A DNA stretch of 64,000 bases from Thalia democratica (lineage: Eukaryota): assembly GCA_965202585.1 (NCBI GenBank), contig OZ241829.1, forward strand, positions 63,550,001-63,614,000, written 5' to 3'. A program made the position numbers and the translations under genes. Of this stretch, positions 651 through 37,976 are shown one piece after another. How positions within the stretch are numbered: the first letter of the stretch is position 1; the number at the start of each line of letters is the position of its first letter. The notes below the pieces were generated by a model. The model was not told the DNA's origin, made no database searches, and saw only the letters and a list, made by a program, of their open reading frames with translations.

Positions 651-2377
651 ATGTTAGAAAAAAATAAAAAAGATTTTTTTATTTTTTTTTTATTTTTTTT
701 AAATTTTGCAAAGCTTAGGCCAGAAGTAGATGTTTTGTATAACGTAATGCAAATCACTAATTTAATTGTGCAAAAAGTTAAACAACATGTGAAAAATTTC
801 CAATATGCTGTTAAAAGAGTTCGTAATTGTAGTGTTACAGATCATGCAAAAATATGCCTCTTTTTTTCCGCAAAAGAAGTTTGTGACAGTGTAAAGGTAA
901 ATGTTGCTAAAAGATTTAACTTTTCAGAACACTTGAGAATATTGCAGTTATTTTAGAAAACTTGTATTCGTTTTATTAAAAATTTTTTTCCTTCTGACCT
1001 TATCGAAGCAGTGAACAATTTTTATCCTGTTGTAGATTGTAAAAAGCTATAAACCGAATTAATAGTTATTTACAATCGACAAGAAATGCACAAAAGGGAA
1101 TTATTAAAAAATCTTCTGTACATTAAGAATAACAATCTTTCTGATAGTTTTTGTGAAAGTATAAAACTTCTAGAAACTCTAATAACTATACCTATGTGTT
1201 CAACTGAAGCTGAAAGGACATTTTTATCTTTAAAGAGAATAAAAACGTATTTACGAAATACCATGGGTCAGTCTAGATTAAACTCCCTAAGCGTTATTTC
1301 TGTTGGTAGAGACTTAATTAAAAAATGTAGTGGTTTTAATGAGGAAGTTATGAATTTATTTATAAACAAAAAAGATAGAAGGATAGATTTTCATTACAAA
1401 GGTTGAAAATAAGCATTTAAGTTTTTGTTTAGGACAAACATAGGTTTTTATTTGTAATTACTTTAGCTTTTGATAAATATGACATGTTTCAGATATATGT
1501 TTTTTATTATTAGATATTATTACTTGTAGTTTGTTTTACAAATTCTATGCTTTGTCTGACTTAAATTACATTTTATTTTGTTATTATTTTCGAAAATGTT
1601 TAGCTATTTTATATATTATATACATTTTATATAAAAAATTTTGCTTTTGTAGATATTCAGATATTAATATGTTTTGTAGATAGATATCTGTTCTTTAGCT
1701 ATTCAATTTTACTGTTGTTAAGTCTTACGTTTCGAACTTGCCATAAAACTGTTTTTCATTATGTCATGTGTTCTACATTTTTCATTAAATGTTTCTTTTA
1801 TGACAAGTTTTGATTTGTATTTTATAAAAATTAAAAAAACAATAAGCTAAGTTCACCTTGCTTTAACTTTGTTATAATTCAGATTTAATTTTTTAGCATT
1901 AATACCTAAATTACATTAAATAAGCAAGCAATCTATTCTATTTATAACATTTCAGTTTCTTTTACTAAAAAATAATTTTGTGTAACACATAATATGCAAT
2001 GAGGTGTTGTTATCACTGTTGTATTGCATATTTAAGAGATTGATTTCTTTTTTCTTAAATAAAGCAAGTTGCAACATATTTTTAAAGATATAAAGTTTAC
2101 TGTAAATAGTAAAAACAATTTTTGTATAGAAAGTTTACATCTGTGCAAGTATAAGTAATTTCTATAAAATTTATACCTTTTTTTAATTGTTTAATTTTAT
2201 AGTATGAAGTATATTTTTAAACATTTGCTTCGAACTTATTTTACTTGATGAACTTATTTCAATTGTATTACTTATAAAAAGATCTTTTTATAGCTAATTA
2301 CAAAAAGATTAATTTAGGGGATTTTTTGAGAAATAAAATTGCGCACCCCCTTACCAAAACACCACGCTACGCAACTG
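651..2377 (+). mobile_element. Decayed hAT transposon (ZMYM1-like transposase C-terminal half plus right end)
   Basis: ORF 1086-1406 has the hAT dimerisation motif TIPMCSTEAERTFLSLKRIKTYLRNTMGQSRLNSLSVIS. ORF 651-956 continues upstream with stops and frameshifts. Right terminus ACCACGCTACGCAACTG ends at 2377 (reverse complement CAGTTGCGTAGCGTG, hAT-like TIR). Confidence 0.85.
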
Positions 2378-12700: not shown

Positions 12701-14710
12701 AATAAAATTGTATTGTAAAAGTTATTAAGCTTCATGGTGCAAAATAACAAAATATTTAATTTTTTTTTGATAATTGAAATCAAACTAAAAACTAACTTTT
12801 TATACAATTATTACTTATAAACAACTAATGATAACTTTATACATTTTTCAAAACCAACCGAACACGGATAATTTCAGATAAGTGGTATCGGCCATCCGGG
12901 GCCTCCTGTCAACCAGGCAGTTGAAGGTCACGCTGCTGTTGGCAACCAGGGTCTGGTTTACAATCCCCCACCCCTCCAAGCTTTCCCCCCTCTTGAATAT
13001 GACGTACACTCGGGGACGGTAGCAAACGCCGTTTACGTACACGTCTGAGCGGTTGAGGGATGGGAATTCGGGGTGGAGATTCCTGCTTTTGCTCTTGCAT
13101 TGAAGGTTCGTCCACTTGGCGACGAACTCCTCATCGCTCGTTGCTAGGTAACGGGCAAACGCAATGACGTCACAATCACAACGAAGGTTGTCGTTTGGGT
13201 GCAGCCCGAGATCTGTGAGGTGACTCAGCCGCGTCATGACGACGTCGTCGTTGCCGGGCAACGTCAGGAGGCGGTTGTTGTTGAGGCTGAGATGGGTGAG
13301 ATTGGGGAGGTCTTCGAGGCAGCTCCAAGGAAAATGTTCGATTAAGTTGTCGGTGAGGTACAACCTAAATAATAAATTTGTAGGCTTGGATAAAATTATA
13401 ACCAACTGAAACTGAGTCGGTATTGATAAAAGATCAAATAATGTATGTTTTAAAGTTAAATTTATTAAAACTTAGATTTAGCAAAATTACTAACCCAGAG
13501 AATATAAATAAGATTCAGTTAGTTATTTTAAATGAATTCGAAATCTGTAATTTTCAAATATTATATCTATTTTCAATGTTTTTAAATTCAAGCCTTCTAA
13601 CCAACTTTTTTAATAAGCCAAGATTTTTAAATGCACTTTCGTTTATGCTGACTATTTGATTGTCTTCTAGTTTCAAAATAAGAACATTTGGCAGACCTTT
13701 AAACATCTGTAATTTTTATTTTACTGTTACATTTAATTTGTATCTAATTTATTTAAAGTTTGTTTTTTTACTAAAATTCATGTAAAAATAACACTCCATT
13801 CTATTAAGGATAATCAAGTTAACAAGTAAAAATAAATATCCTGGATAAGACCTTAAAAAGTATCCGTGGTGTTCGACTCGATTAGCGAAAGGTTTTTTTG
13901 AACACCAGGACCAAGGACCAAAATTTTTGAGAAGTTTTTTTTTTCCTTAAATAAACAACATATGAATAGCCAAAATAACCCTATTTCTAGTGTACACAGG
14001 ATTGACTTATTGTTTTTTGAATTTTGGTAAAGCTATTATTTTTACGATTTTGTACACATACTTCTTTTTAACATTTTATTTGGCAAAACTAAACTTGTAC
14101 TTTTTATTTATTTTGTCATCAAGTTTTATACTTTAAAAAAACTTTAATCATATGCTATTTGTGGGCATAAACTAATTCCGATTAAATATAAAACGTTTTG
14201 AAATTGAGATTTTATTTCATGTTTAGGGATAAAGTTTATTCGAACAAATTTTTGATCTAACAGAAAATCTTTAAAAAATAAGCTTCCTAGAGTAAATAAA
14301 ACTTGATCAAGTAAAACAAACTTACATTTGCAGTTAAATTTCTCATATTTTCTTGTCTCAGTCTGAACATTGTCACATTTGAAGGAACATCTTTAAAATA
14401 GTTTGTGCTTTTGTAACTAGAGCAACTGACATAAAATCCTTTTTCTGTATCCGTTTCTGAATAGTTCTTACAACTGTTAAAAAAAAAAAATAATCGATAT
14501 ATCTTTCTACTTGGCGGGAAATTTGTATAAATATTTAATACGACTTCAAAACTGTCTTAAAATATCCAAATATTCTTAAAATAAAAAAACTATTAAAAAC
14601 AAATAGTAAAACTAAATAAAAAGTTACCTGCAGTTTGTTAAGCAAGATTCACTAAACTTTACATACAAGTTTGTTAAAATGAACAGCACATGATAATCAA
14701 ATAACTTCAT
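3721..14710 (-). CDS. Type I membrane protein: signal peptide, LRRNT, 4-5 LRRs, LRRCT, Ig-like, FN3-like, TM, short tail (LRIT/LRFN-like), about 552 aa
   Basis: Exons (minus): 14710-14628, 14473-14326, 13706-13606, 13364-12859, 12507-12374, 12033-11873, 11215-11116, 5117-4974, 4457-4297, 3841-3721. All are GT-AG with matching phases; total 1659 nt. N-terminus MKLFDYHVLFILTNLYVKFSESCLTNCSC; LRR LYLTDNLIEHFPWSCLEDLPNLTHLSLNNNRLLTLP; LRRCT NLRCDC; Ig-like strand TLVANSSVTFNC; FN3-like FICCVILPEKKRGVCGQF; TM VFVMFIVGGFLLGLGVVPLAVATSY. The acceptor at 12033 is the least certain boundary. Confidence 0.85.
7779..10317. mobile_element. Tc1/mariner-pogo-like MITE (outer element of a nest)
   Basis: TIRs CATTGCTTATTCACTTATCCGGAC (from 7779) and GTCCGGATAAGTGATTAAGCACTG (to 10317), 22 of 24 matching. 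Flanked by TA on the left and TG (a probable mutated TA) on the right. Confidence 0.75.
8411..10206. mobile_element. Non-autonomous hAT-type element with 41-bp CCGG-rich subterminal repeats
   Basis: TIR TAGTGATGTACCGGA ... TCCGGTACATCACTA. Perfect 8-bp TSD ATTATATG at 8403-8410 and 10207-10214. Tandem unit TCCGGATCCGGTTCCGGCCGGATTCTAATTTGAAAAAAAAG at about 8470-8630 and 9990-10170. A second left end lies internally at 9932. Confidence 0.9.
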
Positions 14711-16893: not shown

Positions 16894-17089
16894 TTAAGAT
16901 AAAAATATTTTTATTGTACTTGAATGTAGCTCCTTGCTGACAGAAGATGACTTTGCATCCTTGATAGTATCTTCTTCTTTGGTAGCAGACTTTTCTTCTT
17001 TGTATCTCCTACTTGGACGACGTCTCTTGTGCCTTCTGTATCCTTTTCCGTAGTAGCCTCTCGAATAACCCTTTCCTCCGTAGTAATGA
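16894..17089 (-). pseudogene. Paralog of the last exon of the secreted-protein gene, with a 1-nt frameshift relative to it (pseudo-exon or diverged alternative terminal exon)
   Basis: Reads HYYGGKGYSRGYYGKGYRRHKRRRPSRRY, versus DHYYQKGYSKGYY at 19799. Adding one A at TACAAAGAAG restores RRKVCYQRRRYYQGCKVIFC, which aligns with RRRTCYGRRHHIRGCGVHHFYC. Weak acceptor TTGTTGAG| at 17090. Confidence 0.6.
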
Positions 17090-18294: not shown

Positions 18295-18877
18295 CGTGTC
18301 AAGCATGCACGAAAGGACAATTTTGCACGGAGGGTCGAACTTGCACAAAGATACTTTTGCAGAAAAAAAAATTTGCACGAGAGGTCACTTTTGCTCGAAA
18401 ATACTTTTGCACAAAGGAACACTTTTGCACGAAAGGACAATTTTGCTCGAAATACTTTAGCACGGGTTTGATTTTTTATTTCTATTTTTTATTTCTTTAA
18501 TTTTTTTATTTTAATCTTTACTATCACTGTTACCCCTAACCCTTAACTGTTGATAAGTTATTTTTTCTTCTTTTTGATTTTTTTTTAACTCATTTAACAC
18601 TTTAACTTTTTATTTATAAGTAATTTTCATTCAATTTTTTTTTATCACTGTTGCCTAATATTTACCCTCGGTAGGTAATTTTTATTTAATTTTAGGTTTT
18701 CTAGTATTCTATTTTATATTTTACTTTTTTTTTTTTTTAATTTTGTATCCCTTGTGCATAAAAGACCCTTCGTGCTAAAGTGACCCCTCATGCAAAAGTG
18801 TCTATGTGCAAAAGTGTTCCTTCTTGCATATTTTACCTTTCGTGCAAAAGTTTTTCGTGCATATTTGACCCTTACCC
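18295..18877. mobile_element. Foldback/MULE-like MITE with inverted TTTGCACGA arrays
   Basis: Left arm repeats TTTGCAC(G)A and right arm repeats (C)GTGCAAAA; ends TGACCCTTACCC. The core CTATCACTGTTACCCCTAACCCTTA is shared with the 42262-42769 copy. Confidence 0.8.
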
Positions 18878-19620: not shown

Positions 19621-21166
19621 TTAACAGTAGAAGTGATGGACTCCGCAGCCTCTGATGTGATGTCTTCTTCCGTAGCAAGTTCTTCTTCTTCTGATGCACC
19701 TTGATCTTCTTCTTGGAAGACATCTGTATCTTCTTCTCACTGGAACGCATCTAACTGGGTGGTAGTAGCCTTTTGAGTATCCTTTTTGGTAGTAGTGGTC
19801 TGTTTAAATTTGGTGAAACACTTTTTGAATTTGTAAGCTTTGCGTATAATCAATTTTGCTATCGTATCAAAATTGTTAACTTAGAAGATAAATCATTTTT
19901 GGTAAATGGTTATGCTTAAAACTTATATTTTATAAAAGAATTAAAAGCTAAAATTATATAGTTCTTGTGTCCTTTAATAAGCTAATTTATATTTAAAGCA
20001 CACAATTTAATCAGTACTTTTAATTCTGTTAATTTCTTGACTTGTGTATAAACAAATGTAGTTATCTTGTTTATGTGATTTTTTTTACCTGGAATTCTGA
20101 GTCCGTTAGTTGGTCCGTATTTTTCTTTTGGGGTGTATGGGTGGTAATCTGTAAAACAAGTTATTTAGTTTTATTATATATATGACTTTGATGCTACATC
20201 TGCTTCTTTTACAACTAGTACATTTTTAAAAACTTTTTATAAATTTCTATACTTAAATCTCTATTTTATTTTTGTTTTACCCGGGATTCTGAGTCCGTTA
20301 GTTGGTCCATATTTTTCTTTTGGAGTGTATGGATGGTAGTCTGTAAAATAAAATTAAAACTATAAACTAGAATAACTATCAGTTTTTTACTATTACCTTT
20401 TATAGAAAATAGACAATATAGTTAACACGTAAGTTTAAAAATAGAAACTCTTTTTATTACATAGTAAAGCTAGTAATTTAAAAGTAAACTATATAAAATC
20501 TTAATCAAGTTAGTAAAATTAACTCCTAAATATCTAAGCAACATGTTCAAATGTTTTTTTGTTGTAGTTTTTAGTTAAAATAGAATTTTAGTTACCTGGA
20601 ATTTTAAGCCCGTTGGCTGGTCCGAACTTTTCTGATGGAGATGGCAAGTCTATAAAATGTTGATTTAATTATAAATAACAAATGTATGATATCATATAAG
20701 ATAATATACATCTTTTATAAGAAATTAAAAGAGAAACATATGTTGTACATCTCAATAGAAAATGTTGAAATGATTTAGTTGCAACTTGAAAAAAAAATTA
20801 TACTTTTATTACCTATATAAAGAATAAAATTAAAACTTCAAATTGTATTAAAAGTTTTAGTGTTAATCATCATTCATTCTTTTTAACACTAAACTTCGAA
20901 AAAATAGTTGTATATTTATATTAATTTGTAAAAAAAAATTATAATCTGTGTAACAAGAATTGGTAGCAACATTAACCAAAGAAAACTTTGTTCTTTCAAG
21001 TTGGAAACTGTACAACTTTTTACTCTGTTTTAAAATACCTATGTATAAACTACTAGTTGTTTTATTACTTTTTATTAGATTTACCTGGAATAACAATTTC
21101 TTCTGGGCATGGGTTTGGGATGGCAAGAGCACAACCAACAAGAGCGATAAGAACAATCAACTTCAT
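19621..21166 (-). CDS. Small secreted protein, 144 aa: signal peptide, three exon-encoded repeats, Arg/Cys/His/Tyr-rich C-terminus
   Basis: Exons (minus) 21166-21085, 20649-20596, 20340-20281, 20148-20089, 19799-19621; all introns phase 1, GT-AG. Protein MKLIVLIALVGCALA-IPNPCPEEIVIP-DLPSPSEKFGPANGLKIP-DYHPYTPKEKYGPTNGLRIP(x2)-DHYYQKGYSKGYYHPVRCVPVRRRYRCLPRRRSRCIRRRRTCYGRRHHIRGCGVHHFYC*. AATAAA at 19505-19500. Confidence 0.88.
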
Positions 21167-21237: not shown

Positions 21238-21974
21238 CAAAAATCACAAAGTATTTAGCAAGGGCAGCATTAATCTAATTCCGGGATCAGAAGCCACGAA
21301 GTAAGACTGTGTTTGGTTTTGAGAACCGCTTTTTGAAATGCACTAATCATATTTTGACATTCAATTACGAAATCACTTTACTTTTAACCTTAAATAAACA
21401 GAAGCGATGCTTTGTTTGTTTAAAGACCGCACTTTCACGTCCGCTTAACTGTAAAACAAACAGTTATGGATTAAAACTTAAAAGCTAAACTAAAATAAAC
21501 AGTTACAAATATACCAATTCAAATTTTTCTTTAAACGTACGATGACAATAAACGCTTGATAATATATTAGATCTAGAACTTAATGACTTAAAATATTTAA
21601 ATGTATACTTTTATATTACGTACAGAGATTGAAATTTAACCAAAATAAGTGGAATTAAACAATAGAATAAATGTTTCATGACAAAAATATTGTATTAAAT
21701 GCTCTTACACTTTTTATAAGTTGGTTTTAAAGAATATTACACATATTTGGTTTCTAAGACATACTGGACAAGTTTTTAATACTTATTTTTTATTAACATG
21801 TTTATTCCATAAAGTTGCATTTTATTTGAAAACAAAACTTCTTAACAGAAAATGTACTGTTATCAAAAGTAGTTAAATAAGTACTAATACAAATTTATAA
21901 GTTCTTTTAAGAATGCATGATATCGATAAAATTCATTTATTACAACTAGTTAAAAGTTAAACTAGCTTAGACCC

Positions 21975-22519: not shown

Positions 22520-22645
22520 AGTTTATTGAACGACAAAAAAAGGTGCTCAAAATAGTTGGTCCTAGGACCTGGTGCCCAAAGAACCTTTCGGTTATCGAGT
22601 CGCACACCCAGGATACCCTTAAAACGTCATGTACAGGACTAATAA
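22520..22645 (+). repeat. Unclassified dispersed repeat, copy 1 (copy 2 at about 62015-62125)
   Basis: ATTGAACGACAA..CTCA.AA....TTGGTCC.AGGAC...AA..TTTC.GTTATCGAGTCG.ACAC..AG......AACGTCAT...CAGGAC is shared between the two loci. Confidence 0.7.
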
Positions 22646-23114
22646 ACACAAAAAACTAAAAGCATATTTCATGTTGCTTTAATCAGTTAGTAAGTTAAAT
22701 GTTTTTTTTTTAAATTAAATACTGAATTACTTTAATGTTTTAATTTTAGTCATATTTTAATAAATTACTTTGTGTTATAACAATTGTACATTAGAAATTT
22801 TGGTTAAAATGAAAAGAATAAAAACACTCTTTTTTCTTTAAAGTTTATTGCATGGTTTTCGAAATTTAGCTTTAAAATTTTTAGTTTCCTTAAAAACTTC
22901 TACTTATTTTTAGTTACGAATTTATTTTTATTGTGTTATAACCGTATTATAATATAAATAAACATTATAGTAATTTTAACACCTAAATACTTTAATTAAG
23001 TTGGTTTTAAAAGTGTTTGTATAAAATCTAACATGTAATGACGTATCAAAGGAAAGTATAAATAAATTATGTAAACACTTTTAATCTTTTTTTTTTTTCT
23101 ACTTGGTTCTAGTT

Positions 23115-24004
23115 CAAAGATCGGCATGCTGCAATCCGCGGGCCGCAACAATGTACACTTTTGAAACTTGCACTAGATATTTTGGGATCTGAAATAAAAG
23201 GTAAACAATAATCTCAAGTACAGTTTACGGGAAGCCTTAATTATAAGAACCTATCAAAAATTAGTTTAAAATTTATACAAAAGTTAAATAGCATAAATCA
23301 AAGTATTGTATACGTTAGGTTAATTAACAAAAAAATAGAAAACCAAGGTTAGTGTGAGATAAGTAACTCTTGTTAAAGAAAAATTTAACCCGTTATTGAT
23401 TGACAAAAAATACTTTGAATTTTTTTATAAAAATATTTAAAATTAATATTACAGCTAGTCAATTTTTTTCACAAAGTTGTGTTAGTTAAATCTATGCTTA
23501 ACATTACCTCATGTTTTTTTGCATCTAATTTGAATTTTTTTGAAAATATATAGTTTTATTAATTACTTCACTTTAAACAAAGTAAATAAAAATATACAAT
23601 TTATTTTAGGTTTAGTGTTTATTTTACTAATTACAACATCAAGTAAGTTTTAATTTCTTCAAAATTAAAAAAAAAACGATCTTTTAAGGAGTTTGAGGTA
23701 GATTAGCTTAAGGCTGGGCAAAATTTATACTCAGCGGTTCAGATTTACAAAAAAACCACTCTACGCTAAATAAAAAACATATACTAAAAAGTTGAAAAAT
23801 ACCCTTCAAAAATATAAATATGCTGAAAAAATGGGTTAACCACTATACTACAAAACAAAATTATGAGCACGTTTATGTTATTCATTATAAGAATACTCAA
23901 TAAAATTTGTATAAACCAACTTTTTATAAAACTAGACAATAATTTTCCCGCCAGAGGGTGCTGCATTCGGATGCAAGCCGCGGGTTGTGAGTTGCCGACC
24001 CTAG
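23115..24004. mobile_element. Old hAT-type MITE (CAGGGGTCGGCA family)
   Basis: Degenerate TIRs CAAAGATCGGCA / TTGCCGACCCTAG with subterminal CCGCGGGCCGC motifs; related to the 47455-47804 element. No clean TSD. Confidence 0.5.
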
Positions 24005-24741
24005 CTTAGGTGGTCATAAAAACTTTTTTTTAATACGTTTTACGCTAATTTAACTTCAAAATCTTTTGGTAGATAACTGATTGTTCATCAATAAAAGTCA
24101 GCTGAAAACAGTCTTCTCAACGTACTTTAATAACAGCCGAAAAGTGCGTACTTAAAAGAAAGTGCGTATTCAAGTAGTCATAGTATAATTTTAACTAATG
24201 TTACTCTCATACTCAATTATCTTGAACTTAAGTAAAAACAAACTTAATTTTCTAAATAGTTGTGAAAATTTGTTTAATATTTATCCAAATTTGTTGAGGA
24301 CGAGAGTAAAACTTTTTAAAAGTACTGAAACCCTTAATGTGCAAAAAAATGTAAATATTTTAAAATAACTATCCTTTAGTTGTTTGCTTATTTGATGACA
24401 TTTTAAAACAGTATTTGAAAGTCTTTTACTGTGTTCTAAACATATTTAAGACTTATACTCGTATATACATATAAGTTTGTCTGTTATTCATGTCTGAATA
24501 TTTTTTTATATTTTGTGCTGTATGCTTTTAAAAACAGCTTTGCCGACAATTATTTTACCTTTTTACTGTTTTTAATTTAATTTGGTATCTAATTCTAAAT
24601 ATTCAGTCGGCATCATTTTTTATATACTATAAAGCTAACTAAAATTTTAAAACCTATTGTTACGTCAATAAAATTTCGATGTATAATTTTTAATTAGTTT
24701 CAAACTATATTTTTTCAAAACAACACGTTTTAGAAAACGCA

Positions 24742-25944
24742 ATGGAAAAGGCATTTATTATAAATGATCTTATGAATACAATGCTGACTGCAGTAGAAGA
24801 AAACTTGTCAACTAACAGTTTCAATGCTATCCAGCTGCAAACTAGCTTCGAAAAAGCGAATGAGATTGTTGCATATAATAATGATGTACCAACTCAAACT
24901 TCTGAGATTTGTAGTGGAAACAAAACTGAGTCTAACTTAAAAAGTGAGTTTGAGTTCTTAAATGTTCCTTCGTTGGTACAAAACAAAAGAAAAGGTAGTC
25001 TTATAACAGAAGACTCAGATGTAGTTAAAGATTGTGATATTCCTCTCAATATCGAGCACCAACCTAATTTGCGGAAAGTAAATGATACTGTTGTATCTAA
25101 TGCTCAAATAAAAAATTCTGAACCATCTTGTTCAGACAAAACTAAGTTTACTTTGGAGAGTAAGTCTGAGTTGTTAGACGTAGCTTCCATACAAAACAAA
25201 AGGAAAGACAGCCTTATAACTGGAAAATTTGATGTAGCTAAAAGTGGTGGTGCTTCTCTTAGTATGGTATCTGGCTCGGTTGAAAACAACATTTCTAAAA
25301 ATGAACTTAAAAATGACACTGTTTCAATTGATGCAGCAAAAGATGTAACGCGTATTAAGTCTGAATCAAGCATTGAACTCTCCTCTGAGCTGGAAATGAA
25401 AAGAAATTTCGACATGGGAGATAATGATGCATTGCTTTCTGTAAAGAATAAAGATGACATATTGAAACTCGAAAAAGAAAAAATGATTCATGATAAATTA
25501 TCTGTAAAAAAGAAAAAGATAATAGAAGTGTTTAGTTTCAGCTCACTCGAAAGAGAACTGACGCCAGATTACGAAAGTTTGTCTGATGATAGTGAGTTTT
25601 TTCTCACTAAAAGTCCTGATATTGAAAGCCACTTTCAACAAGATACTGAAATCTGTAGCTCAATAAAATCATCCAATAGCAAAATATCGAACACTTTTGA
25701 AATTACCAATGAACGAAAGATGAAATCAAAATCTAAAAAGTTCAGATGGTTTAGGTCAAACCGAGTTTCTCCCGACCAGCTGCAACAAGAAGTAAAAATT
25801 AAGTCAAAGGCAAAGAGGCTAGCTTCGAGTTTTGCTAAAGGATTGAGAGGTTCATTGAACAATGTAAGGAAAGCTTATAATAGCAGAAGACGACTAAATT
25901 TGATGGTTTTATGTCCAGTACCTTTGTTTTTCATGCATTTGTAA
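24742..25944 (+). CDS. Orphan low-complexity Ser/Lys/Asn/Glu-rich protein (or one large exon), 400 aa, with an internal duplication of about 72 aa
   Basis: 1.2-kb uninterrupted ORF in very AT-rich DNA. Repeat KTESNLKSEFEFLNVPSLVQNKRKGSLITEDSDVVK vs KTKFTLESKSELLDVASIQNKRKDSLITGKFDVAK. A possible acceptor TTTTAG at about 24733 means it may be an internal exon. No family recognised. Confidence 0.7.
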   Translation: MEKAFIINDLMNTMLTAVEENLSTNSFNAIQLQTSFEKANEIVAYNNDVPTQTSEICSGNKTESNLKSEFEFLNVPSLVQNKRKGSLITEDSDVVKDCDIPLNIEHQPNLRKVNDTVVSNAQIKNSEPSCSDKTKFTLESKSELLDVASIQNKRKDSLITGKFDVAKSGGASLSMVSGSVENNISKNELKNDTVSIDAAKDVTRIKSESSIELSSELEMKRNFDMGDNDALLSVKNKDDILKLEKEKMIHDKLSVKKKKIIEVFSFSSLERELTPDYESLSDDSEFFLTKSPDIESHFQQDTEICSSIKSSNSKISNTFEITNERKMKSKSKKFRWFRSNRVSPDQLQQEVKIKSKAKRLASSFAKGLRGSLNNVRKAYNSRRRLNLMVLCPVPLFFMHL

Positions 25945-35201: not shown

Positions 35202-37976
35202 ATGAACTCACAGTGGAGAGTTTTCAATTTTTTCAAGACCGAACACAATGTGCTACCATTAGAAAGCAGCTGGAATTCCATCAGAGAGGACATTGATGTC
35301 ACATGCTCAGCATGTGGGCGTGGCCACATCTTGTTTGGAGATTCAGCTGGAAACATTCACAAAATAAACCACGCGTTCAATGTGACTTCATTCCAAGCTT
35401 TCAAGTGCACCGTGACCCATTTGGTTCAGTTGCAAAGCTACAATATACTAGCAGCGTGTGGTATAGATGAAGAAGGCATCAACCCTGTGATCAAAGTGTA
35501 CAACTTGGACAACACTAACAAGCAGGGTGTGCCGTTTTGCAGCAGAGTTCAAAAAGCCATTCCTGAAGATAACAACCCTTCATATGTGTCTTGCTTTGCA
35601 GTTCATGAAAGTTTGTCTACAATGGCAGTGGGTTTTGATCAGGGGTCTTGCATGGTCTACAAGGGAGATGTAACAAAAGACAGAAGGGGAAACAAATCAA
35701 TTCCCATTCAGACTTCAAGCAAGGACATGATTACTGGATTACATTTTGTAGCAAGTGGAAAGGAAATATTTTTGAATGTTAGTACACAGAATGAAGTGTT
35801 TGGGTATAGTTTGAATGAGAAATTTTTGAAAAAAACGTTTTTAAGTCAAAATAATGGCTGTGAGATGAATTGCAGTGCTTTGACTGACTCTACTTGTGAT
35901 TATAAGCTAGCTGTTGGTGGACCAGAAAAAATCAGTTTGTTTAAAGTTAAAGATTCATTTAGCACTGATGTGCATTTTGAAGGAAAGAAGCAAATGATAA
36001 AATATCTCAACGGTTATTTAGTGGTTGTTTACAAAGACAAAGTAAAACTGTCTTCTTCAATATCAGAGTTTGGTGAAAAAAATGTTGTTAAGATTGTTGA
36101 CTTAAAGCAGAACATGACTGTTTATTCATCATTACTACCGCAAGTGCGTCACTTTATGTTTGAGTGGGGAGCTTTTTATGTTTTGTCCAAAGCAAATAAC
36201 TTGATAAGGCTGCAAGAAATTGATATTTATGAAAAACTAAACAAGTTGTTCAGTAAAAATCAATACACTCTTGCAATAAGCATTGCAGAGAGTCAGGGTC
36301 TAGGCAGTGAAGGAATGATGGAGATATTCAAGTTGTATGGAGATCACCTCTATACTAAAAACGAGTTTGACAAGTCAATAGCTCAATACATAAAAACTAT
36401 AGGCAATTTAGAGCCAAGTTACATAATAAGAAAATTTCTTGATGCTCAGCAAATTGGAAACCTCACACTTTATTTGCAAGAAATGCATGAAAAAGGACTT
36501 GCTAACGAGGATCACACTACCTTGCTTTTAAACTGCTTTACCAAACTTAAGGATGAAACTAATTTGAACACTTTTATAATGAAACCTGATTGCAATCTGC
36601 ATTTTGATGTTGAGACTGCAATAAAAGTTTGTAGGCAAGCACATTATTTTAAACAAGCTTTGCAACTTGCTGAAAAGCATCAGAAACACAAGTGGTTTTT
36701 GAAAATTGTTTTGGAAGACACAAACAAATATAAAAAGGCTTTAAAATACATAAAAAAGCTTTCCTTTAGCTGCATTGAAAATGCTTTAAATCAATATGGT
36801 CAAACTTTGATGAACAGTTTACCATTTGAAACAACAGATCTTTTGATTCAATTTTCCACTGAGTTGTCTCTCAGTTCAAAGAAAAGTTCTTGTAAAGGAG
36901 AAGACTTTATTCATATTTTCCAGAACAACAGCTCAGATATGTTGGTTAAATTCCTTGAACATCTAACTGAAGTTGAAGAACAGCCCTCTTTGTTTGTATT
37001 TAATGATCTTCTAGAGTTTTATCTAAACAAAATCAAAAGAGAAGAAGTTTCAGATGGAAGTGTTTTTGACATAAAAGATAAAACTTTAGACCTTTTAAAA
37101 GATTTATTTAAAAAGCACCCCAAAGATACAGAAAGAGCTACTACACTTTGCACGCTGAATAATTTCGAAGAAGGCATAGTTTTTTTGTATGAGAGTTTAA
37201 ATTCGTATGAGTCCTTGCTTCGTTATTACATGCAAATAAAGTCTTTTGACAAAGTCATTGAAACATGCACTAAGTATAGTGAAAATGATGCTTCACTATG
37301 GGAGAAGGCGCTGACTTATTTTACGCAGCAACCAAACAGCTATGACTACCTGCAGCAAGTATTGGCTTTCATCGACAAACAAGATGTTATTCCTCCTCTG
37401 GTGGTGATCAAAATTCTTTCAGAAAGCCCTTGTGCCACGCTTGGTTTAGTGAAAAGTTACCTGTTAAAAAGAGTGAAAGGAGGACAAAATGAAATAGATA
37501 AGTACCAAGCCTCTATTGACAAGAGAAAAGCTGAAACTGAAGCTTTGGAGAAGCAAATTCACCAGTTAAAAACGGAGGCAACAGTCCTGCAAGAAACAAA
37601 ATGCAGCATTTGCAGTGGTAGCTTGGAACTGCCCACAATTTACTTTCTATGCGGCCATGCCTTTCACCAGACTTGTTTTGAAAGTTACGACGTTTCCGAG
37701 TGCCCGATTTGCATGGAGAAGAACAGAAAGCTGACTGAAGCCATTCAGCAGCAGCAGAGAATGCTGGCAAACCCAACTCAAATGCACAAGGACTTTATGA
37801 GAGGTTTGAAAGAGTCGAGTGATCCCTACCAGCACATTGCAAGTTATTTTTCAAAGGGAATTTTCACATCGAATAACACTCACAAACCGGTCAGGAAAAC
37901 TTCTAAAGATTCTAGTCTGGTTGTTATTGATGACTCTCTTGAAAAAGAACTCTTAATGTTACAAAGTAATGACTAA
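35202..37976 (+). CDS. VPS11: Vacuolar protein sorting 11 (HOPS/CORVET class C core subunit), 924 aa, single coding exon
   Basis: N-terminal QWRVFNFF (VPS11 QWRRFVFF-like), propeller region, clathrin-repeat region YIIRKFLDAQQIGNLTLYLQEMHEKGLANEDHTTLLLNCFTKLKD, RING-H2 CSICSGSLELPTIYFLCGHAFHQTCF..ECPIC, and C-terminal SDPYQHIASYFSKGIF. Acceptor TCTCTTTCAG at 35179 implies a 5'UTR intron. Confidence 0.97.
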   Translation: MNSQWRVFNFFKTEHNVLPLESSWNSIREDIDVTCSACGRGHILFGDSAGNIHKINHAFNVTSFQAFKCTVTHLVQLQSYNILAACGIDEEGINPVIKVYNLDNTNKQGVPFCSRVQKAIPEDNNPSYVSCFAVHESLSTMAVGFDQGSCMVYKGDVTKDRRGNKSIPIQTSSKDMITGLHFVASGKEIFLNVSTQNEVFGYSLNEKFLKKTFLSQNNGCEMNCSALTDSTCDYKLAVGGPEKISLFKVKDSFSTDVHFEGKKQMIKYLNGYLVVVYKDKVKLSSSISEFGEKNVVKIVDLKQNMTVYSSLLPQVRHFMFEWGAFYVLSKANNLIRLQEIDIYEKLNKLFSKNQYTLAISIAESQGLGSEGMMEIFKLYGDHLYTKNEFDKSIAQYIKTIGNLEPSYIIRKFLDAQQIGNLTLYLQEMHEKGLANEDHTTLLLNCFTKLKDETNLNTFIMKPDCNLHFDVETAIKVCRQAHYFKQALQLAEKHQKHKWFLKIVLEDTNKYKKALKYIKKLSFSCIENALNQYGQTLMNSLPFETTDLLIQFSTELSLSSKKSSCKGEDFIHIFQNNSSDMLVKFLEHLTEVEEQPSLFVFNDLLEFYLNKIKREEVSDGSVFDIKDKTLDLLKDLFKKHPKDTERATTLCTLNNFEEGIVFLYESLNSYESLLRYYMQIKSFDKVIETCTKYSENDASLWEKALTYFTQQPNSYDYLQQVLAFIDKQDVIPPLVVIKILSESPCATLGLVKSYLLKRVKGGQNEIDKYQASIDKRKAETEALEKQIHQLKTEATVLQETKCSICSGSLELPTIYFLCGHAFHQTCFESYDVSECPICMEKNRKLTEAIQQQQRMLANPTQMHKDFMRGLKESSDPYQHIASYFSKGIFTSNNTHKPVRKTSKDSSLVVIDDSLEKELLMLQSND

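Follow-up and report, generated by a model that had tools for sequence, protein, structure and literature searches.

Salps form blooms of ecological importance, and almost nothing is known about the molecules that make up their tunic, chain-attachment plaques and mucous nets, or about their innate immunity. Positions 19621 to 21166 of the window, that is, of the whole 64,000-nucleotide stretch of DNA analysed here, raise the question of whether the minus strand carries a working gene for a secreted, arginine- and cysteine-rich protein, and what such a protein would do for the animal. Open reading frame tracks and gene finders overlook short multi-exon genes in this genome of 25% GC, and the gene described here is an example. 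The answer reached is an intact, lineage-restricted gene of a thaliacean tunicate, probably Thalia democratica.

A five-exon gene on the minus strand

The reverse complement of the locus was read and the exons were joined by script. Five exons of 82, 54, 60, 60 and 179 nt give a coding sequence of 435 nt with 144 codons, assembling exactly as a sequence-only reading of the stretch had described, with a signal peptide and three phase-1 cassette exons (54, 60 and 60 nt). Exon 1 (21166-21085, GC 0.43) starts at the ATG, encodes the signal peptide and a short acidic, Pro-rich stretch with Cys20, and ends at the donor GTAAAT. Exon 2 (20649-20596; 54 nt, phase 1-1, GC 0.48) lies between the acceptor TTTTATAG and the donor GTAACT and encodes a diverged unit of 18 residues with the core EKFGPANGLKIP. 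Exon 3 (20340-20281) and exon 4 (20148-20089), each of 60 nt and phase 1-1, encode the same 20-residue unit, DYHPYTPKEKYGPTNGLRIP, and are six synonymous transitions apart. Exon 5 (19799-19621; 179 nt including the TAA stop codon) encodes a Tyr/Gly/Lys patch and then a tail of 43 residues rich in Arg, Cys and His. All four introns are of the GT..AG type, beginning with GTAA and ending with a T-rich tract and YAG, and every exon junction is in phase 1.

Base composition marks the same boundaries, with a GC content of 0.43-0.48 in the exons versus 0.20-0.22 in the introns, in a window of 22-35% GC. A 40-nt GC scan of the locus found no island besides the five exons and a GC-richer stretch at 21245-21344, immediately before the TATA motifs, which suggests that the set of exons is complete. 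In a comparison of tunicate genomes published in 2026, no genome had a lower GC content than that of T. democratica (25.3%), whose coding GC lies about 17 points above this value (PMC13746493). The GC of the window and of the exons fit both figures, and the 25-26% GC of the host, a tunicate, agrees with T. democratica. The TATA promoter and the AATAAA signal claimed in the sequence-only reading are present as motifs, two TATAAA at 21236-21231 and 21223-21218 (a candidate core promoter, 52-70 nt upstream of the ATG) and one AATAAA at 19505-19500 (116 nt downstream of the stop codon), all on the minus strand; in DNA of 75% A+T they are weak evidence by themselves. The five-exon gene is very probably real.

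Layout and composition of the encoded protein

Residues 1-15 show the features of a signal peptide, namely a Met-Lys n-region, a hydrophobic core of 11 residues and an Ala-Leu-Ala cleavage motif. These features bear out the classical N-terminal signal peptide that had been claimed, and they make secretion of the protein quite likely. Cleavage is predicted after Ala15 and would release a mature chain of 129 residues with a mass of 15.3 kDa and a pI of about 9.9. This chain contains 14 Tyr, 19 Pro, 11 Gly, 8 His, 8 Lys and 18 Arg, together with seven Cys, an odd number. The full protein of 144 residues is without an N-glycosylation sequon, a second hydrophobic segment or a GPI-like end.

The predicted mature chain begins with the acidic Pro-rich stretch (residues 16-27), in which Cys20 is the single cysteine. 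Next come three units rich in Pro, Tyr and Lys, one per symmetric phase-1 exon: the diverged one of 18 residues and the two identical ones of 20 residues. All three share the core EK[Y/F]GP[T/A]NGL[K/R]IP, and the repeat motif occurs three times in the window versus not once in 100 shuffles. In the patch behind the units, 5 of 16 residues are Tyr. With a net charge of about +1, the chain ahead of the tail is non-anionic as a whole, and no clean processing site was found in the sequence between this front region and the tail.

The 43-residue C-terminal tail carries a net charge of +16, and its reported composition was confirmed by recounting: 16 Arg (37%), 6 Cys and 4 His, with no Asp or Glu, and also no Lys. 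Its cysteines stand at residues 103, 112, 120, 127, 137 and 144, all single and 7-10 positions apart, with 8, 7, 6, 9 and 6 residues between successive ones, and the last is the C-terminal residue of the protein. Two His-His pairs and three of the cysteines fall within the C-terminal 15 residues. Hydrophobic residues other than Cys make up only about 23% of the tail.

Genomic surroundings

A decayed duplicate of exon 5 lies at 16894-17089 on the minus strand, 2.5 kb downstream of the gene, with a core about 70% identical and gaps of 12 nt and 10 nt. It is preceded by a good acceptor-like AG at 17091-17090. The homologous frame would need a phase-2 acceptor, whereas all upstream donors are in phase 1, and the three reading frames are all open owing to the AGA/AAG-rich composition. 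When the window was searched with the exons (tblastn and blastn), exons 1-4 had no copies in the interval that separates this duplicate from the gene; the duplicate is likely a decaying pseudo-exon. In the same searches, made with all exons, no second full copy of the gene was detected, the decayed exon being the only copy found. A foldback or MITE-like element with TTTTGCACGAAAGG-type sub-repeats occupies about 18306-18873, between the gene and the relic exon; its inverted arms are about 80 nt long and 72-79% complementary, with one core of 23 nt at 91%.

The open frame at 35202-37976 on the plus strand is an intronless VPS11 gene of 924 codons. Its best named relatives are those of the ascidians Clavelina, Phallusia and Ciona, at about 50% identity, and its closest copies, at 96% and 88% identity, come from marine metagenome DNA of Tara Oceans, on contigs about 3 kb long (L001-L005). 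From these two levels of identity it follows that at least two close relatives of the animal were sampled in ocean metagenomes. As a synteny route to orthologues of the Arg-Cys gene, the VPS11 contigs of about 3 kb are too short to span that gene.

Neighbouring open reading frames had no exact record in the protein collection. The frame at 1086-1406 (plus strand) encodes a hAT-family C-terminal dimerisation domain (PF05699, E 4e-6) and is a transposase remnant. An exon at 12848-13405 (minus strand) is, at 53% GC, unusually GC-rich for this genome; it belongs to a larger gene that lies downstream of the Arg-Cys gene, and it encodes leucine-rich repeats (LRR_8, E 6e-7) and, behind them, a cap-like stretch containing Cys. 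At 24742-25944 (plus strand) lies an open frame of 400 codons, rich in Ser, Lys and Glu, without a Pfam family and absent from the protein collection, and its gene may have further exons upstream, marked by GC islands at 22523-24183.

Selection on the repeat unit and codon usage

Six of the 60 positions distinguish exon 3 from exon 4, each by a synonymous third-position transition, so that the 20 encoded residues are identical. With about 13 synonymous sites, this corresponds to a pS of 0.45 and a dS of about 0.69, at a dN of 0. Under neutrality, six of six substitutions would be synonymous with a probability of 1e-4 to 5e-4. Outside the splice consensus, the introns on either side of the two exons cannot be aligned. 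The sequence-only reading had offered purifying selection or a very recent duplication as explanations of this pattern. The former stands, since a dN of 0 beside a dS of about 0.69 and unalignable introns indicates that the amino-acid sequence of the 20-residue unit is held by purifying selection. The latter fails, as does gene conversion, because a pS of 0.45 and introns that cannot be aligned rule out both; on this evidence the duplication is judged to be old and to have escaped recent homogenisation by gene conversion.

Codon use in the gene is strongly biased when compared with that of the neighbouring VPS11: proline is encoded by CCA in 18 of 19 cases versus 6 of 22, TAC accounts for 13 of 14 tyrosine codons versus 15 of 37, and AGA is used in 17 of 18 cases versus 12 of 19. 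Such a bias suggests high expression, with VPS11 as the only reference in a window that holds no known highly expressed gene; this reading is based on the preference for TAC, which opposes the A/T mutation bias of the genome.

Search for relatives

Relatives of the protein were searched for exon by exon, the N-terminal 85 residues being compared as single-exon pieces and the tail as the 59-residue product of exon 5. Among 1.84 billion representative proteins, phmmer found no genuine relative of the exon-5 product. The sole match, P0001 (E 5e-4), was rejected as spurious, being a tandem-repeat translation of 394 residues with RRRR-A-C words. In Pfam, no family was found for exon 1, the 20-residue unit or the tail, and an hmmscan search of Pfam-A with the exon-5 product at E values up to 10 returned a single, chance match to Ribosomal_S6e. 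Among PDB sequences, the same product retrieved only compositional matches to eS6 (E 0.1-2). Similarity to vanabins or metallothioneins was likewise absent from Pfam, the 1.84 billion representative proteins and PDB sequences.

In the ESM Atlas, the nearest cluster was protamine P1, with a score of 0.68 and 133 of 256 shared features; the threshold of the tool for anything more than a lead is 0.9, and the match is treated as a compositional lead. JGI metagenome contigs contained no match to a degenerate DNA pattern that allowed for the cores of all three repeats. AlphaFold2, run on the tail alone as a single sequence, drew short beta-strands at an unusably low confidence (pLDDT 53, pTM 0.35). 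A literature search found no tunicate protein of such a description. The view that the protein cannot be assigned to a known family thus agrees with the absence of a match in 1.84 billion representative proteins, Pfam, PDB sequences and the ESM Atlas.

Possible functions of the protein

The composition of the protein is tentatively read as that of an abundant polycationic extracellular matrix or adhesive-type cross-linker, a reading slightly favoured over a penaeidin-like host-defence peptide. In such a cross-linker, the Arg-rich tail would bind polyanions, for example sulfated glycans or acidic polymers, and the odd number of cysteines would permit intermolecular disulfides. The parts rich in Tyr, His and Lys would permit oxidative or metal-mediated cross-links, and the Pro-rich units would serve as an extended spacer. 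The even spacing of the tail cysteines, together with the odd total, suits intermolecular disulfides as in protamine P1, and P1 itself, the lead from the ESM Atlas, is a disulfide-locked Arg/Cys condenser of polyanions. High Arg and low hydrophobic content in the tail point to a polyanion binder rather than a membrane-active peptide, and there is a resemblance to mussel-type adhesives and to matrices cross-linked by peroxidase or tyrosinase in the Pro/Tyr/Lys units and the Tyr/Gly/Lys patch. The codon bias suggests an abundant product. Cationic antimicrobial precursors usually carry neutralising anionic propieces, and a region ahead of the tail that is non-anionic and strictly selected is unexpected for a mere propiece. 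Several points speak against a matrix or adhesive cross-linker. Tyr makes up 11% of the mature chain, well under the 20-30% of DOPA adhesives, and salps do not attach to substrates, so that an adhesive would need a use in the tunic, the feeding net or the plaques by which chains attach. Furin-type cleavage could occur at Arg runs such as RRRR-T and cut the tail, a cationic six-Cys C-terminal domain behind a Pro-rich region also has the look of a penaeidin-type antimicrobial, and there is no homologue from which a function could be borrowed.

It is possible, though on the unlikely side, that the protein acts in host defence, either as a whole mature chain that is a chimeric Pro-rich and Cys-rich antimicrobial of the penaeidin kind, or through the tail alone. 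In the second variant, which shares this probability, the 43 residues would form a beta-hairpin-like knot with three internal disulfides and would kill microbes by binding anionic membranes or nucleic acids. A signal peptide and a C-terminal domain with six Cys and a charge of +16 are what such a peptide would show, the strands drawn by AlphaFold2 along the tail would suit it if their pLDDT were usable, and ascidians make six-Cys antimicrobial peptides, the turgencins (PMC7024374). Against host defence stand the lack of an anionic propiece and of a clean processing site ahead of the tail, a mature chain with seven rather than six Cys, and the low hydrophobic content of the tail. In addition, no defensin, penaeidin or other antimicrobial Pfam family was matched at E values up to 10, and the strict conservation of the 20-residue Pro/Tyr unit would be unexplained in a mere propiece. 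The failed family tests, by profile and by Cys pattern, rule out membership and leave a mode of action that may be similar. Another extracellular role is unlikely, whether as an egg or sperm coat protein, in metal binding through the His pairs and Cys, or as a source of signalling peptides cleaved at the Arg runs. Fast-evolving small secreted orphans are often reproductive, the His-His pairs and cysteines are concentrated in the last 15 residues, and by the general consensus of convertase sites RRRR-T and RRR-S/Y look like such sites. Yet the repeat units lack flanking dibasic sites and Gly-Lys-Arg amidation signals and so are not classical neuropeptide copies, no search returned a vanabin or metallothionein, and nothing positive favours any one of these options. 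Very improbable, finally, is a non-working gene, that is, a chance or decaying open reading frame without expression. The absence of its transcript or protein from 1.84 billion representative proteins and the decayed last exon downstream would fit it, but a single frame stays open through all five exons, the splice sites match the consensus, GC enrichment is specific to the exons, six of six differences between exons 3 and 4 are synonymous, and the codon bias is strong. Moreover, no RNA-derived, Logan-assembled VPS11 returned from the collections exceeds 52% identity to the VPS11 of the window; the collections therefore seem to lack transcriptomes of this lineage, and the absence of the gene from them says nothing about its expression.

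A bolder form of the extracellular cross-linker carries a small chance only, namely that with this protein a so far undescribed class of extracellular 'protamine-like' proteins has its first representative. A salp would here secrete a disulfide-lockable polyarginine tail on a Pro/Tyr spacer, and the tail would condense or cross-link acidic extracellular polymers, such as sulfated tunic glycans, by complex coacervation. To our knowledge, complex coacervation as a materials strategy is so far known from mussels and tubeworms and not from pelagic chordates.

Small secreted orphans are common in animal genomes, and current understanding is not overturned by one more. A selected, probably abundant secreted protein with a Cys-periodic tail of 37% Arg is a testable candidate for a component of tunic, plaque, net or immunity. 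Should it prove to be a cross-linker, wet adhesives or coacervates would gain a minimal design that is new; should it prove antimicrobial, it would represent a new tunicate peptide family.

Comparison with known systems

Penaeidins are shrimp antimicrobial peptides with a Pro-rich N-terminal domain and a six-Cys C-terminal domain, and the salp protein resembles them in having its signal peptide directly before a basic mature protein, without an anionic propiece, and a Pro/Tyr/Gly-rich front with a cationic six-Cys back. It differs in that the exon-5 product has no penaeidin match in Pfam at E values up to 10 and in its cysteines, which in penaeidins follow the pattern C-x3-C ... CC ... CC with two CC doublets and in the salp tail are all single and evenly spaced 7-10 apart. 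Further differences are the 37% Arg of the salp tail, a mature protein of 2-3 times the length in which exons encode repeats, and the phylum. The label 'defensin-like' in the sequence-only reading is not supported: no profile of the beta, big or CS-alpha-beta defensins was matched in Pfam, PDB sequences gave only eS6, and the tail lacks the closely spaced or adjacent cysteines of defensins.

Turgencins and St-CRPs are six-Cys antimicrobial peptides of the ascidian Synoicum turgens, with which the salp tail shares a tunicate origin, a length of about 35-45 residues, six Cys and a cationic character (PMC7024374, PMC13208793). No sequence match to them appeared in any of the searches made.

Protamine P1 (PF00260) is, like the tail, rich in Arg and Cys with scattered Tyr and His, and of similar length. 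Protamines are nuclear sperm proteins without a signal peptide, whereas the salp protein has a secretory signal, its tail ends a secreted repeat protein, and PF00260 was not matched at E values up to 10. The earlier label 'protamine-like' therefore holds for composition, at an ESM Atlas score of 0.68 that lies below 0.9, and not for the family. Since the defining features of penaeidins, defensins and protamines were looked for and were not found, the protein is, by these comparisons, not regarded as a member of any of the three families.

The adhesives of mussels and tubeworms are known systems comparable to the cross-linker that is tentatively favoured. Mfp-1 consists of Pro/Thr/Tyr/Lys decapeptide repeats, mfp-3 and mfp-5 are rich in Tyr, Gly, Lys and Arg, and mfp-6 is basic and rich in Cys and Tyr. 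The salp protein is likewise small, secreted by prediction and very basic, with short Pro/Tyr/Lys repeats, a GY/KGY-type patch and cysteines for redox chemistry or cross-linking, and its Arg and Tyr content suits condensation driven by cation-pi contacts. The likeness is compositional only: Tyr amounts to 14 of 129 residues, the adhesives have no periodic Arg/Cys tail, and the salp is pelagic.

In gene architecture, the closest parallel is with the schistosome micro-exon genes (MEGs), which also encode secreted products and have short symmetric internal exons, here of 54, 60 and 60 nt in phase 1-1, that could be skipped or duplicated in frame. In MEGs, micro-exons hold the greater part of the coding sequence and exon skipping yields variant products. 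The small exons make up only 174 of the 435 nt (40%) of the salp coding sequence and there is no sequence similarity, so that the MEG architecture is fitted in part. Taken together, these comparisons describe a new and so far orphan family whose overall design, a signal followed by Pro-rich repeats and a cationic Cys-rich end, follows known kinds.
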